DNA of 64,000 nucleotides from contig NW_004797634.1 of the NCBI RefSeq assembly GCF_000002075.1, positions 534,539 through 598,538 on the forward strand, given 5' to 3'. Positions 32,001-41,000 of the stretch are shown here, piece after piece (position 1 is the first letter of the stretch; each line of letters opens with the position of its first letter). The position numbers were made by a program, and so were the translations under genes. The stretch is from Aplysia californica (taxonomy: Eukaryota). Under the pieces are notes generated by a model. That model was not told the DNA's origin. It saw only the letters and a list, made by a program, of their open reading frames with translations, and did not search any database.

Positions 32001-35000
32001 CATCGGCAAATAGCTATCTAAATCAAGAGATACAGAAAAACCTGAATATACTGGTACAAACTGTATTATCATAGGTGTCAACAGTAAGAACAAATAGTTT
32101 TCAAAAATCAGAATAAGAGAATTTCCAATCAAACGGAGAAGAGTGCAGCATGGACCTAGGTCATAATAGTCTGCACTTTTTTGGCACTAGGTTTTTACAG
32201 TAGGTTGATCTGGCTTCAACATGTCTGGTATCTAGTTCTCACTTTAGGGAGGTATTACTGGTAAGAATTTCAAGAGGAGAAATGAGACTATAAACAATAT
32301 TTTCAGTTCTCTTCTCTCCCCCATTGCAGTTCTTTTTTTTTCTCTCTTTACTAAATATAACACGACGTTAGCATCGGAACCAGATTTGTCATCATAGTAG
32401 ATTTCCACAGAAAAAAAAATAATACAGCACAATGGAAGTGACAAAGCTCTCTCTGTATATGACACCAAACACAGTATTGAATATTTCCCGTAGAACTTAC
32501 GTTCATTGAAGAATTTGTGTCTGCCACTGTTTCATCATCAGTAGGAAACTGGTAGATATGGACTCCATTTGATACAAGTTCAGACATCAGCTGTGGACAT
32601 TTCAATTCGTGAACTTCAGTTTATGATCACTGACCTCAACAAAATATGATCAGAAAGCATTCCTTATTTTGAATTATTTCAAAATTAAACAGCTATGTTC
32701 CTGAGTATGTGGATAAGATAAGATAAGATAGGATAAAACGAGATAAGAGATGAGATGGATGAGATAAGATATGATGAGATGAGATGAGACAAGATAAATC
32801 TTTATTGTCAAGATCCTGGCACATTGGTTTGGTGTTTCACCATGTACACACACACACACACACAGAGAAATACACACACACACACACACGGACGCACGTG
32901 TGTAAACATGCATTGGAGAGTAGATGTGTGTCAATAAAAGAAAGAGTATGCACAAATTTTAATATGCATGTGCGAGAGAGATAATATGTAACTTGATTTT
33001 TTTAAGTATCCCGAAACGGCCAAGCCAGGGTGGTTGAGAGACTAAAAAAGCTGGGAATCCAAGAGACAACATCTAAGCTTGCCTTTCATATAGGCCTACC
33101 TTGGTCTTGAATTTAGTGAGCTCTGTCTTGGTGATTGTGTCTGCTTTAGCAATGACCGGGATGATGTTCACTTTGGTGTCCAGTTTCTTCATAGTGACCA
33201 GATCCAAGGCCTTCAAGCTGAGGAAATTGTCAAACAGTTATTGCTAGAGTTTTTGTTTTAGTTTTAGTGAGAGTTTTATGGCACTTGCAACACAATAAAG
33301 TCATATAAGTGAGGAAGCTTAGAGGCGTTACAGTTACAGGAGAGTAACCAATACAAAAAAGAAGGAGGAAAGGACGATGTTTGACATGAAAGAAGAAGCA
33401 AACCACACCAGAACAGCAAGCACCCACCCACTGCTAGAGTTTATTAGGGTAGCAAGGAAGATGGCAAAAGAGCAAACGATAACCTTTATAAACAACTCGA
33501 ACGCGAAGGAGAAAAAATGGACAGCTTCGACTAAGAAGAGAAGAGGCTTGCAAAGAGAATATAAACTCTAAAGAGACCGTTTTTTAGAACCTGGAAACAT
33601 ACAAAAAAGGGCAGTTTTGAATTTTTTGTTTAATATAAATATTGACAACAACAAAATTTTTTTTGCTATAAAATGTCTATGGAATATCAAAGATAAACAC
33701 ACAAAATAAGCAGAAACAGCTCTCATAAAACAATCATGACAGGTTCGGGATGCACCTCCAACTTCATTGATGTCATCTATCGGTATTCAAAGTGTAAATG
33801 TTAAAGGTCAAGACAGCAATTTATTAAAACGGAAAACTGATTCAATATTTTTTCACACAATAGATAGTCTTTTCTTCAGACACCCCCCCCCCTTTCCGAG
33901 ACAAAACAGAAACAGTTCTCATAAAACAGCCACATCAAGTTGGAAATGCACCTTCATTGATGTCATGGCTACGAATGCTCAAAGAGAGGATTTTAAAGGT
34001 TAGGACAGCAATTACTTTAAACTAAAAGCTTATTCAATAATTGATTTTCAAACAACAGAATGCCTTTTCCTTTCTTTCTTTACTAAATTGATTTGAGAAA
34101 AATAATACACTAACCCGCCCCCCCCCCCCTTAAAAATTAGAAAACAAAACTAATTAAAACAACAACAAAACTCTATGGAAGCCATGAAGCATTCACACTA
34201 GAGACTGGGATGTTCACTTGAAGATGAACGAGAAGAAAGAAAAAAACTCATCCAACACTCTTCTATCAGTGACCTATTAAATTCACAGAAATTTTTTTCT
34301 TTGCCACAATGTTAAAAATGAAAGTAGAAATATACCACTCACGAATGGCCGGTGGGTGCAATGAAGTAAAGACAGGCATGAACACGCGTATCGTGGTAGG
34401 TGTGCAACATGCGTTTGATCTTCAGCTCCTCATGAAGATATGCGTCAAACTGAGCATCGATGTAGTCTACTATGGGCTTCCAGCTGAAACGAAATAAATG
34501 CAGTGTGTGAATGATTCACAGTACAGTGAAATTCGATTGATAAAGAACAATTATAATGAGGTAAAAGGTAAAACAATTTTCATAATATGTTTTCTTATAA
34601 ACCTTTTAAGACAATATTGACCAGATGGGGGAATCCCCATATTATTGTTGTCTTTTAATTTTGAATTTGTGTTCTTTTTTAACATCACCTTTTCCTCACT
34701 ATAAGCAAAGAATTTGGAATTTTCATGAAATTTACACTGCAAAGCATAAAGACAGGAAATAGAAATATAGGGCCTACTGTACAGAAAACTGGAGACAAAA
34801 TTTCTTCCCTGGAATAAATGTTTCTATTTTGAGAACTAAAAAAAAATAAATAAGTAAATTAGATTGTTTTTTTCTTTTCTTTAGACAATAAGAATGCTGC
34901 CAATGACTCGTTCAAAAATATCTTAGCGTGTGAAATGATGAATATGTAATGATAATGAGCAATAGTAAAATAGATTTTTATAAGAATTTCATAAACCTGA

Positions 35001-38000
35001 TACATGTATATTCAAAGTGAAACATATTGAACATCAAAATAGGAACAAGTAGTCTAATTCCCGTACGCCACTAACATCATTAGAGTTTAAAAAATAAACA
35101 GGAAGCGAAATGTATGGATGAAGAAGCTACAAACTAACAACACTCTTGACATAATGCTGGATACATGTAATATTTCAGGCATGCAATGTATTTTTAGGCT
35201 CAAAGTATATGCAAAACCCAAAACACCACATAAAGATCTACTGAACATCACAGAGGTAATCGTATTTCACAATATAAGGCCTAATCTATGGAGCATGCAT
35301 CAAATTACCATAGCAAACACATTTGACACAACTCAAACCCACTATTAAAGCCTCTAAAATAAAAGAAACTTTAAAAGACGGCTGTCTGCTCCAACACAAA
35401 CTCTCAGCACCCACTAAAAATATGACAGAGACCCAGCCTCATGTCTTCACTACTAGTATATCCCCATGCATACACCGTCAACAAGCAGGCATTCCCATAT
35501 ACACCTTCAAAAAGCAGTTTCATTTTGATAAAAGTCTATTCAAAGAAATAAAATTGACCAGTATGGATGGAACATAAGCCTCAACTTAGGCAGGTATTCC
35601 CCAGTTCATGTTCCAAAATTGGTGAAGAGCTCACAGCATAAAATATTACCTACAACAATAAGTGAGGAAAATAGGGAGCATGCAAAAGTGGTACATTTAT
35701 ATCTTTTCTATTCTGGACGGGGGGAGGGCAGTGGATGAGGTTATGTGTAAAGTTTTTGACAGTATGCAATCTGCAAAAGGATAAGTGTTTTCAAGAGCAA
35801 GTAGTCAGTTAAGCGAGTCAAAAGCTGCCGAGAAAAAGCAAAAAATTTGAAGAACAACCGTGAAAATCAGAAGCCAAGTGAAAACAATCAGAGTTAAGTG
35901 ACACGCGCTGCACTTTTCTCTCCCCCCCCCCCCCTCCATTCTTACACACCCTCACTATGATTCTGACCTTTTCTAACAAAATACTATTCATGCATTATGT
36001 TCAACAGGGAAAAAAAAAGTAAAATAAATCAGTCCAAGATTGAACATTACTAATTGAGATGACGCCCCTTATACGTTCAAAACAAGGTGACTTTCCTAAA
36101 ACTGACTGCAAAGCGGCCTTGTCAATTTCATAGAGTCACACACGCGAAGACATGGCGTTATGGTGAGTTTGCCACATCTGCAGTAAGCCAGGAAGCCAAG
36201 AGGTGCGAATGAAGCTAAAAGGATCTGGCTTGGAGCTTCATCCATTAGTTGTTTAATTTTAGATGCTATGACGAAAATCACAAACCTTGAAAGTCCAGTT
36301 GGACTGGTTTTACTGGAACAATAATAATAATTAAGCGATATGCTTTAAAGAGGCCTTATTTCTTCCCTTATTGACACTAGGGACTTGAAATGGCATGCAA
36401 TTTCCAACAATTAGATAATCATTTATTTGACCTAAACATTTCCAGACCAACAAGTCCCATTCTTTTCAAATTGCCACTTTGAACAGAGAAATCCTAAGCC
36501 TAATAACTCTCAAGACAGAAATATAATAGTCCATATTTTCGGGTCTTCGCTTATTTGTACCCAAAGGATTTGCAGGCAAATGGATTTTTTTTCAAAAGAG
36601 AACTAATATTTTGAGAGCTCGGAGTCCCAGGCTGTGCTTCAGTAAGAAGAAACGTCAAGTACAATAACGCAGAGAAAGTGCCCAGAATAAACGTGCATAC
36701 ATTTCACAAATATAAACTATATAGATGGAGTCATTTGTTACAGATATCATACAACTATTATGACACGGTTATTACACCGCTTGCAAGAGCACAGTTACTA
36801 CACTATTATAGTACAGTTACTAGTATTGCTATGGTCCAGTGACTACACAGCTATATAGTACAGTTACTAGTATTGCTATGGTACAGTGACTCGAATGTTA
36901 TAGTACAGTAGTTAGTTACCAGACTGTTATAGCACAGTTTCTACACTGCTATGATACAGTCACTAGTATAGCTATGGTACAGTTACTACACTATTATATG
37001 GCAGTTATCAGACTGTTATAGCACACTTTCTACACTGCTATGGTACAGTCACAAGTATTACTATAGTACAGTATATATACACACTTATTACTAGGCTATT
37101 ACAGTACAGTTACTACACGGTTATAATATAATAATGGTACAATTACTACACTCTTAAACGGTACAGTTATGAGGCAAGTCTTGCTGAGATACAGAACAGT
37201 TACTAGTATTGTTATGGTACAGTGACTACAGAGTTATAGTACAGTTCTACACTTTCATAGAATATTACTGCAACTATAATAATACAGTTATTATGTTGTT
37301 ATGGTACAGTTTCTACATCGGTATGGTTCAGTGGAAAGTTTACAACTTTCTAACTTCAGTGATACAGTGACTGCCCATGCAGTTGAATAAAAAGAGACAA
37401 GCCGTAGCAATAGAGCAGAACAGAAAAGGCTTTCCTTGTACATATATAGAAAATTATCAGTAATATTGTCAGTGGCATCAGAATGAAAAAGAATGTGCAA
37501 TTCTCGTATATCATATATATATATTTAAAAATAAGAACCCTTGCCAAAACACGTGTATACACCACACCCTATCAACTTCTAAACTACATAAACACAACGA
37601 CTGATAAAGAAAAGACAACAGAAAAAATTTACAGTTCGAGATATATAAGATAAATAAAATCAGCCAACCATACATAAACAAATAAAAATACTGAAAATAG
37701 AAGAAAAAGAAAAAAACAACAACCTCCATACAAAAGTACAACCCTGCAAGATACTGTCAGGCACTAAGGACTAGACATTTTCAAGCACCTCACTAAACTC
37801 TGAGGACTAACTTGAAGGGCTGCACGCAAAACACAAAAGGAATGCACTACATCCAAAAACTACCTTGACCTCACCTATCATCTTTGTTAATCTGATCCCC
37901 AAACCCTACAGAGTCCACCAGAGTCAGTTTTAAAAGCACATTCTTTTCACGAAGTTCTGAAAATGGGAAGAAGGCCAATGAGAAAGAAGTATGACGAGTC

Positions 38001-41000
38001 ATTAAAAAGTGGGTGATACCAGAACGTTTTGTGGGGAAAAAAAAGAATAAATCAGAGAAGTAAATGCAAGATCATAGTCTCCATCTTCATGGACTCATAC
38101 CTTTGAGGGTGTAATAATAAAAATGAGAAATTCTTTGCTTAAAGAATGAATACTACAATAATCAGGTCATGACACTAAGAGACCGCAATTATAACCTTTA
38201 CAGATTACCAACCCATATTAATTTCCTGGAAACTTCCTGCACTTATGTGCTAATCCATTACCCCTTCAGATTGGTTACAAGTTTTGACTGTGGGGGGTGG
38301 GGTTCTGTTCCTTTTTACGAAGCTAAGGGGTAATGGAGAACACGCACAAAAATATGCTCAAATTCTCAGAATACTTTCTCCCATCTCATAGTGCAAGGAG
38401 GTAAATTGTCCATGAAGACAGATCCTCTGATCTGACAGAGCCAGGTATTTCTCTGAAAGAAACTCCAAAGCAAAGTAAATTTCCTTACCTATGGTCCTTA
38501 TTGATCTGATCACCAAAACCAGTGCTGTCTACTATAGTTAATTTCAAGCGAACATTACTCTCATTCAGATCTGAAAATGGGCGTAGAACCACTCGATAAA
38601 GACGGGAAGATGGGAGGGGGAAGGTACAGCTGATGCAAAAAGATGTCACATACTAGAGATATTGATTTATTCTTGACAAATAGTATTCCACCCAATCGGT
38701 AGTCTTCCATCCTAAAATCTACGACATAATATATAAAACAAAAATGTACGTGTGCCTAAAGAAAGGTACAAAAAGTCGGATTTGACCGTTTTGAATTAAG
38801 GGTTGCACCTTTTATAGATAATTCAATGCTGAACACAGTGGGTTTTTTTAATTTTTGAGATATCTCAAGTAATTTTTTAGATGCTGTACATTTACGTACT
38901 GTAAAAAGATCTAATTTTGATAAAATTAGCTTTTAAGTTTAAGACACTTACTAACTTTAAAAAACCAATGATTCAAGTTTCCAATGGGGTTTTTTTCTTG
39001 GAAAATTCATTTCCAATTTGGCATTCAACAGACATCAATATCATGATCAGAATTTAATGATAAAACATGGCGAGGAAGAGAAAACCTGCTTCAAGAACAG
39101 ATTTGAACACTTTCTAAAACTAAAAGCAGTGTTCGTTGAATATCTTTAAAAAATACCTTAGTCTCAAAATTATTCAAAATAAAATATTTGGGAGTCAAAC
39201 CAATGAAAACCCTTTTAACACATTGTTAACAAATGGTGGAACTATCATTTTTTTATGAAAACACATTTTGGTCAAAAAAGTGATTTTTTGTCATCAGCCT
39301 GTAGCTCAAAATGGTCTGTGGCGACTTTTTGTACCTTTCTTTAGGCACACACACAAATATTGGAAAACAATGTTAACTTCATCACTAATAAATCAACTCT
39401 GGACCAAACTGCAAAAGGAAGTACAGTAGAGTCCGCGTCTACCGAGCACGTTTAAAAAACAAAAACGCAGCACTCTAAACCTAAAAAAATCTGGTAGTCC
39501 TGCAGATTTTGGTTTCAGCAGACTCCACTTATTTAACGTTACACAAAAGCAAAAATAACCGAGTAAGTTCTCATTGAGAATGTTCTACATCAGCTAAAAA
39601 CATCATCTACAACAAAATCAGAAAGCCATACATTCAAAGTGAAATATATTCCTATTGACCAGGTCAGAACATATAATGCCAGATTCAAAAGTTCAAAGTC
39701 AGAGTGGTAGACTTAAGACAGTAAATTAAAAAAACCCTGACAAGAAGTCGTTTGGGAGCACCTGTCAGAAACGTTTTACTTGATTTAAACTATTCAAGAG
39801 CAAGTAATTTTTAAATTTAAAAGAAGAGAAGCACTTTTAAAGTGATATTAGAAATATGGCACACTAAACAAGAGAAATGATTAGTAATGAATAAAATACA
39901 ATTACATCTATGTTAGTTCCTCGTGGAATATCTTGATTCCTCAACAACCTCATGGATGCAATTCACTAATGAGTCATGAAGTTCACAGAAAAAAACATGA
40001 TTTTTATGCAGCTCATTATTCTTTTGTAAGCAGTTGTCCAAATCTTCATAAATGAATCGAAAAAGTATCTGGGCCCCAAAAAGGTTGAAAAAAAAAAGTT
40101 CCCCACATCATATCATTTATACAAACAAAACAAGCATGGAATCATAATGTTCACCGTAAGTGTGGGCCTTGAGCTTCACTCCTGGCAGATCATGAGAACT
40201 CGGGGTGGAGTCGAAGTTTGTGTTGAATAGTGTGTCCATCATGGTTGACTTGCCAATGCCAGTCTCACCTTGAAAAGAAAGATTCTAGCTTTACAATATT
40301 CATTTGATTATGGATGCTGCAACACAATCAATCTTTCATGAGGTAGTTACGCATGTGCCAGCCACTCCAGTGTATACAATTTTTGTCTTGTGAAAGTAAT
40401 GATTAAGATGTGATGTACTATGAGCCAATAATTAATGCGCTTTTAAAACAGATCCAATAAGACCCTTAAATAAGATAAAATCAAAAGAGTACATTATTAT
40501 TCTAATCATGGACTTCAATTCTCAGAAGTTTTGCAGATAATTTCTTTAAACATTAATTTATATCTCTATGCTTAATTTTTCTTTCTCTTTTCAGATGTTT
40601 TCTTTTTGTTGCAATGCTTGACAAAAGTTAAACTATCATTAGAACTTTCCTAGAAATACAAAATACTTTTTTTTTTGTAAAATGATTTTTGTTCTGTAAT
40701 GTTTTTAAGAAATTATAATTGTTCGACAATCTGTTGTTTTTCTTTCTTGGAGAGATGTTTTGGAATTTGGAAGAAAACAATAGATATAACATGAAACATG
40801 ATGCTTTCCCACTCTGTTTTCCTGTTAAGTTTCATGGCCACATCATACTAGATAAACTTTACTTCAGTTTTCAAAGAAACCAAACAAGCTCTTGTTGTTT
40901 TAGCTCTACGGGTATCACAACTAGACAGATGATGTCAAAAATGAACTGAGCGCATTTGACAACTACAACAAGTTGTGACTCACCGACACACAGTATGTTG

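Follow-up and report, generated by a model that had tools for sequence, protein, structure and literature searches.

Can one septin gene produce two versions of a core part of its GTPase domain by choosing between duplicated exons, and if so, how old is this choice and what might it change in the protein? The question is raised by a window of 64,000 nucleotides from Aplysia californica (assembly GCF_000002075.1, contig NW_004797634.1, 534,539-598,538; all positions below are in window numbering), in which a reading of the sequence, referred to here as the original prediction, had placed two similar exons of 82 nucleotides (nt) between exons 3 and 5 of a septin gene. In this study, the two exons, named 4a and 4b, were found at the predicted positions, 38570-38489 and 37956-37875 on the minus strand, and are confirmed as mutually exclusive tandem duplicated exons that are real and expressed. 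We consider it likely that exon 4 was duplicated in the gastropod ancestor and that its two copies have since formed a regulated, mutually exclusive pair supplying modestly different subunits for the SEPT6 slot. Between 44829 and 28884 on the minus strand, the gene comprises 11 coding exon positions:

44809..44829, minus strand: exon 1, coding part (MATEVEL)
40984..41113, minus strand: exon 2 (hook-loop, alpha0, beta1)
40155..40268, minus strand: exon 3, constitutive (P-loop, switch I, start of beta2), donor phase 1
38489..38570, minus strand: exon 4a, 82 nt, ancestral-type hairpin, 28 residues including junction codons; junctions in run X3; RefSeq X2
37957..38488, minus strand: intron 4a-4b, 532 nt, with an AG-free zone of 124 nt before the 4b acceptor
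37875..37956, minus strand: exon 4b, 82 nt, derived hairpin, ancestral switch II, 28 residues; junctions in runs X3 and X13; RefSeq X1/X3
34343..34483, minus strand: exon 5, constitutive (helix alpha2, Sep1/Sep2 motifs), acceptor phase 2
33100..33217, minus strand: exon 6 (G4 AKAD)
about 32590-32501, 31883-31787, 30773-30617, 30068-29936 and 29042-28884, minus strand: exons 7-11, inner boundaries approximate; polyacidic region before alpha5', septin unique element and coiled coil

The exon pair and its expression in Aplysia

The Pfam septin search (PF00735) counted at least four septin loci in the Aplysia genome, and the present gene is the only SEPT6-group septin found there, no other of these loci matching exon 5 at SEPT6-group level; septin searches were run exon by exon, and full-length searches were queried with a scallop protein. 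SEPT6-group septins do not hydrolyse GTP and occupy the slot between SEPT2 and SEPT7. The best PDB and protein matches of both exons were SEPT11, SEPT8, Ciona SEPT6, Drosophila Sep2 and SEPT6, and each exon is the counterpart of residues 88-113 of human SEPT6. Exons 3-6 spliced with 4a are identical to RefSeq Aplysia californica septin-11 X2, and with 4b to X1/X3, so that both isoforms are already present in the automatic annotation.

Both exons have AG/GT ends and run from phase 1 to phase 2, and their peptides are identical at 21 of 28 residues, as had been predicted, the seven differences from 4a to 4b being D89E, N91R, S93K, R96L, I101L, T105V and H115D (Aplysia numbering). The same residue is specified by 20 of the 26 fully encoded codons, in 13 of these cases through different codons, and nucleotide identity is 53/82 (65%). 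The segment extends from the end of beta2 through the hairpin, beta3 and G3 to switch II, in agreement with the claim that it contains G3 and the start of switch II. The flanking introns of 4a and 4b are unalike except in the 11 nt that end the acceptor. This identity exists in Aplysia, but other gastropods do not share it, so that it reflects consensus and chance, and it was ruled out as a relic of the duplication. A third copy of the exon was looked for and not found in the window, where local scores were 129-133 between 4a and 4b and no more than 36 otherwise, and the Aplysia genome contained no further copy, except for the matching exons of three other septins. When spliced in silico, 3-4a-5-6 and 3-4b-5-6 are both open, and the predicted loss of frame in the other combinations was recovered: counted from the start of exon 3, inclusion of both exons gives a stop at codon 67 and inclusion of neither a stop at codon 41.

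The RNA evidence was taken from assembled contigs of two runs of unspecified tissue, X3 and X13, the latter under a different organism label with nearly identical sequence; the depths of such contigs are semi-quantitative and rare forms are dropped. All four one-exon junctions that the original prediction had named for checking were present in the X3 contigs. Upstream, 40155>38570 had a depth of 224.3 and 40155>37956 of 324.3; their total, 548.6, compares with 549.3 for the contig of exon 5. Downstream, 38489>34483 had 86.5+99.8 and 37875>34483 had 124.6+125.8, each pair of values representing two alleles of a synonymous single-nucleotide polymorphism at 34483 in exon 5. The share of 4a in X3 by contig depth is about 41-43%. 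In X13, a single contig of 1923 nt joins 3-4b-5 at a depth of 217.8, and 4a is without coverage. Each exon is therefore spliced between the same constitutive neighbours, 3 and 5 (four junctions in X3, two in X13), with 4a:4b at about 41:59 in X3 against 4b only in X13. Neither joint inclusion (4a>4b) nor skipping (3>5) was seen among contigs that retain intron pieces of depth 2-15, a search which rare forms, or forms degraded by nonsense-mediated decay (NMD), would escape. Since only one-exon junctions were found and the two runs differ, the exons are used in a mutually exclusive manner, as predicted, and their use differs between samples. The raw-read runs X20 and X22 contained no reads on any exon, only repeat-derived intron reads.

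An assembly artefact, an allelic copy or a pseudo-exon could also be suspected from tandem similarity, which is all that favours it. It is contradicted by the nucleotide identity of only 65% with saturated synonymous sites, by single contigs that span the intervening intron, by spliced junctions for both exons and by conservation of the pair across gastropods, and its probability is negligible.

Distribution and age of the pair

RefSeq contains both peptide types for three Haliotis species and for Aplysia, Biomphalaria, Physella, Littorina and Babylonia, and protein records also contain both for Bradybaena; a single type is found in the records of scallops, oysters, clams, mussels, octopus, Lingula, Lineus and starfish. 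Genomic DNA gives the same picture, with tandem 82-nt exons in the order 4a then 4b in Elysia, Biomphalaria, Lymnaea, Littorina, two Haliotis and Lottia, and a single 82-nt exon with the same boundaries in the chiton Liolophura, the scallop Argopecten, the protobranch Solemya and Octopus. The second exon is thus kept in related species, and no pseudogenised 4a was met with in the gastropod genomes read. The pair spans Patellogastropoda, Vetigastropoda, Caenogastropoda and Heterobranchia, which puts its origin in the ancestor of the gastropods, about 500 million years ago. Judged from these sequences, the tandem duplication of exon 4 probably took place in the ancestor of living gastropods, and the pair appears to be restricted to gastropods.

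The exon tree, a weak one of 82 columns, groups the 4b copies together with the long-branch 4a of Littorina, and sets the remaining 4a copies beside the single-exon outgroups; a single origin of each copy was not rejected by the approximately unbiased tree test (p-AU 0.39 and 0.37). Between 4a and 4b, synonymous sites are saturated, with a proportion of synonymous differences (pS) of 0.75-1.09 and of nonsynonymous differences (pN) of 0.17-0.24. The claim of an old duplication under purifying selection is borne out by the pan-gastropod distribution, this saturation and a pN of about 0.19.

Land snails (Bradybaena, Candidula) have two SEPT6-group genes, the second copy being seen only as 4b-type proteins, which suggests that 4a may have been lost after gene duplication. 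A Biomphalaria gene model of 433 amino acids fuses part of 4a in frame to the whole of 4b, which is probably a prediction error.

Divergence of the two copies

The two copies have changed in different halves of the segment. Differences from the chiton peptide in the first and second half, summed over seven species that are related, so that the events are not independent, amount to 19/22 for 4a and 29/6 for 4b. The first-half changes of 4b relative to the chiton are R at position 3, K at 5, L, C or N for R at 8, and usually L at 13. The hairpin changes are fixed in 4b and occur in none of 19 outgroup proteins, and the second half of 4b (G3/switch II) is ancestral, with the G3 glycine invariant in all gastropods compared. 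Exon 4a keeps ESNVR in most lineages and drifts in G3/switch II, where its G3 reads DSTG, DSVA, DSIA, DTVA, DTTG, DTDG or NTTG across gastropods. The contrast of DSTG with DSVG, proposed as a conserved difference between the isoforms, is consequently a detail of Aplysia, given that the G3 of 4a varies across the class. The proposed charge difference did not hold as such either: both Aplysia segments have a net charge of -2, and the first eight residues carry -1 in 4a and 0 in 4b. The charge of 4b has moved with the net value unchanged, because 4b also loses an arginine at the start of beta3. As a separate observation, the 4a of caenogastropods (Littorina, Babylonia, Pomacea: DLTEKNVR) has the lysine typical of 4b, by convergence or partial conversion.

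Exon 4b is also constrained at synonymous sites, with a pS of 0.31 among heterobranchs compared to 0.72-0.82 in exons 3 and 5. Across four heterobranchs, 16 of its 25 codons are invariant, against 14 of 77 in exons 3 and 5 together (Fisher p=3e-5), and its donor is GTGAG in all gastropod species compared. The same heterobranch comparison gave no such excess of constraint in 4a, whose amino-acid variation (pN 0.158, pS 0.82) exceeds that of the neighbouring exons (pN 0.020-0.075).

These figures bear on the possibility that the exons are real and exclusive but functionally near-equivalent, 4b being the main form and 4a a minor, relaxed one, kept because splicing suffers when one of the copies or its splice sites are lost. 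The higher amino-acid variation of 4a and its absence from X13 are consistent with this, and 4a has no invariant gain of its own except a first-residue D, which is common to Lottia 4b and a nemertean; moreover, vertebrate SEPT6-group members interchange in the same slot (Kinoshita's rule, PMC8640212). However, an intact 4a is present in each of the eight gastropod genomes read, from four lineages, its pN lies far below its pS (0.158 vs 0.82), it makes up about 41% of X3 transcripts, and the hairpin changes of 4b are fixed and without match in the outgroups, so that we regard near-equivalence as unlikely.

Possible effects on the protein

The preferred reading, a regulated pair of modestly different subunits, would have the two copies split the features of the ancestral segment. 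Exon 4b may have retained G3/switch II and changed the exposed hairpin between beta2 and beta3 (Q>R, S>K, R>L/C/N), and 4a may have kept the hairpin as its G3/switch II drifted, including Gly>Ala in several lineages. Both isoforms would take up the one SEPT6 position in the hexamer or octamer, with modest differences, depending on tissue or cell type, in surface contacts (4b) or in G-interface and GTP contacts (4a). In this way the isoform pair may do the job of the vertebrate SEPT6/8/10/11/14 paralogues.

The structural literature makes effects of the exon swap at the NC or G interface plausible. In catalytic septins the G3 glycine binds the gamma-phosphate (PMC8640212), switch II makes the beta-bridge of physiological G interfaces, beta3 slips at promiscuous interfaces in SmSEPT10 and SEPT2 crystals, and beta1-beta3 form the roof of the cleft that receives the hook-loop of the partner (PMC7201284, PMC8640212). 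The description of ELQESNV as an acidic NC-interface region in the original prediction was misplaced, since the polyacidic region acting at the NC interface precedes helix alpha5' (PMC7201284, PMC8640212), which corresponds to exon 7 here. As a rough check only, the AlphaFold model of the Biomphalaria 4b protein places strands at 85-93 and 96-104, with a mean predicted local distance difference test score (pLDDT) of 54 and values below 50 over the segment.

A stronger version would be a gastropod-wide, cell-type-specific splice switch, such as between neurons and other tissues, that exchanges a subunit with a new basic/hydrophobic hairpin surface for one with an altered G3/switch II, which might change G-interface strength, beta3 slippage or membrane and partner binding. 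This is a tentative and rather doubtful proposal; if true, it would be the first example of splicing within the GTPase core determining what septin filaments are made of.

Several points weigh against the preferred reading. The higher variation of 4a (pN 0.158 vs 0.020-0.075) also fits relaxed selection on a minor form, the RNA basis is assembled contigs of two runs of unspecified tissue with X20 and X22 empty on exons, and the structure model is of low confidence (mean pLDDT 54; below 50 over the segment). Also, the Gly>Ala change at G3 occurs in single-exon bivalves and a tubeworm: Solemya, Tegillarca and Lamellibrachia have alanine at this place, and no alternative form with glycine was seen in them, so that the change is tolerated in the group and need not alter function.

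How exclusion may be enforced

In steric exclusion of the alpha-tropomyosin and OGDH type, joining of two exons is blocked when the distance from donor to branch point is under about 50 nt, and NMD is a further known lock (PMC7969005). The intron between 4a and 4b has only 48 nt in Haliotis and 69 in Lottia, where no other intron of the gene is nearly as short; its length is 175 nt in Littorina and ranges from 532 to 1597 nt in heterobranchs. With 48 nt, steric exclusion must hold in abalone, where the distance is necessarily below the limit, and it likely is so in Lottia; the sequences of Aplysia, Elysia, Biomphalaria and Lymnaea do not suggest such a short distance. In Aplysia, the AG-free zone of 124 nt makes a branch point beside the 4a donor unlikely. 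These lengths in abalone and limpet suggest that the first lock was steric. The frozen synonymous sites point to splicing-factor elements within 4b as the putative present lock in Aplysia and other heterobranchs, and NMD would remove products with two or no copies of the exon. Both kinds of product carry a premature stop far upstream of the last junction, the frame arrangement expected of NMD-enforced exclusion. Incompatibility of U2 and U12 splice sites was rejected, as the donors GTGAAC, GTAAGG and GTGAGG and the AG acceptors are of the major type in all species.

Exon choice could alternatively depend on competing RNA pairings, as in Dscam and 14-3-3 xi, or on an intron fold bringing the 4a donor near the 4b branch point. 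Two inverted repeats in Aplysia, 38117-38144/34699-34726 and 38408-38433/38069-38094, speak for it, the latter with a nominal p=0.01 among 56 tests. The former pairs at chance level (p=0.15), however, no pairing recurs at the homologous place in other species, no conserved intron blocks were found across the species compared, and the 4a-4b intron folds no better than shuffles (z -0.54, -0.41), with a pair probability of 0.08 for the long stem. Docking and selector exclusion of the Dscam or 14-3-3 xi type was rejected for want of conserved competing intronic pairings; this explanation as a whole is largely refuted and very improbable.

Relation to known systems

The septin pair belongs to the class of tandem mutually exclusive exons known from the human catalogue (PMC9741552) and from OGDH 4a/4b (PMC7969005), being likewise adjacent, homologous, equal in length and phase and present one per mRNA, and likewise ancient, incompatible in frame when combined and used in a sample-dependent manner. 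It differs from these in its septin host, in the swapping of the G3/switch II core and in its confinement to gastropods. The word 'septin' is absent from the main text of the human catalogue (PMC9741552), and mollusc examples of the class include coq-2 (PMC7434440) and oyster alternative oxidase (PMC5589949).

Splicing diversifies SEPT9 and SEPT4 too (PMC8640212), but at N-terminal disordered ends, whereas here a structured part of the GTPase domain including beta3 is exchanged. The vertebrate SEPT6/8/10/11/14 paralogues also vary in G3 (DTVG, DAVG, NTVG, STVG); their diversity comes from paralogues, and that of Aplysia from splicing 28 residues of one gene. The vertebrate sequences compared keep QESNVR/Q and offer no counterpart to REKNVL, the hairpin of 4b. 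No papers on mutually exclusive or duplicated exons in any septin, or on these exons, were found in a search largely outside subscription journals. RefSeq septin-11 X1/X3 and X2 are identical to the products described here, as automatic annotation without interpretation, age or comparison. What is new is therefore a well-dated and apparently undescribed septin case; the splicing principle and both isoforms in RefSeq were known.

Septin diversity is usually credited to paralogues and variable tails, with the G domain treated as fixed. In the gastropods, an entire class, two versions of the G-interface strand and switch have persisted for roughly 500 million years. The pair is a natural seven-residue experiment on the little-studied beta2-beta3 hairpin and switch II, and the gain is a dated case and a testable structural question, with no new mechanism.

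Neighbouring gene and intronic repeats

The first coding exon of neurobeachin lies at 52363-52527 on the plus strand, head-to-head with the septin gene, an order also seen in scallop, abalone and probably Littorina. This arrangement accounts for a Plakobranchus septin mis-named neurobeachin. The intron between exons 3 and 4a contains one or more repetitive elements at 38718-39712, with inverted arms of 61 nt (38745-38805/39295-39355) and many off-target RNA reads, and a degenerate minisatellite of 22-23 nt units occupies 36745-37372 in the intron between 4b and exon 5.

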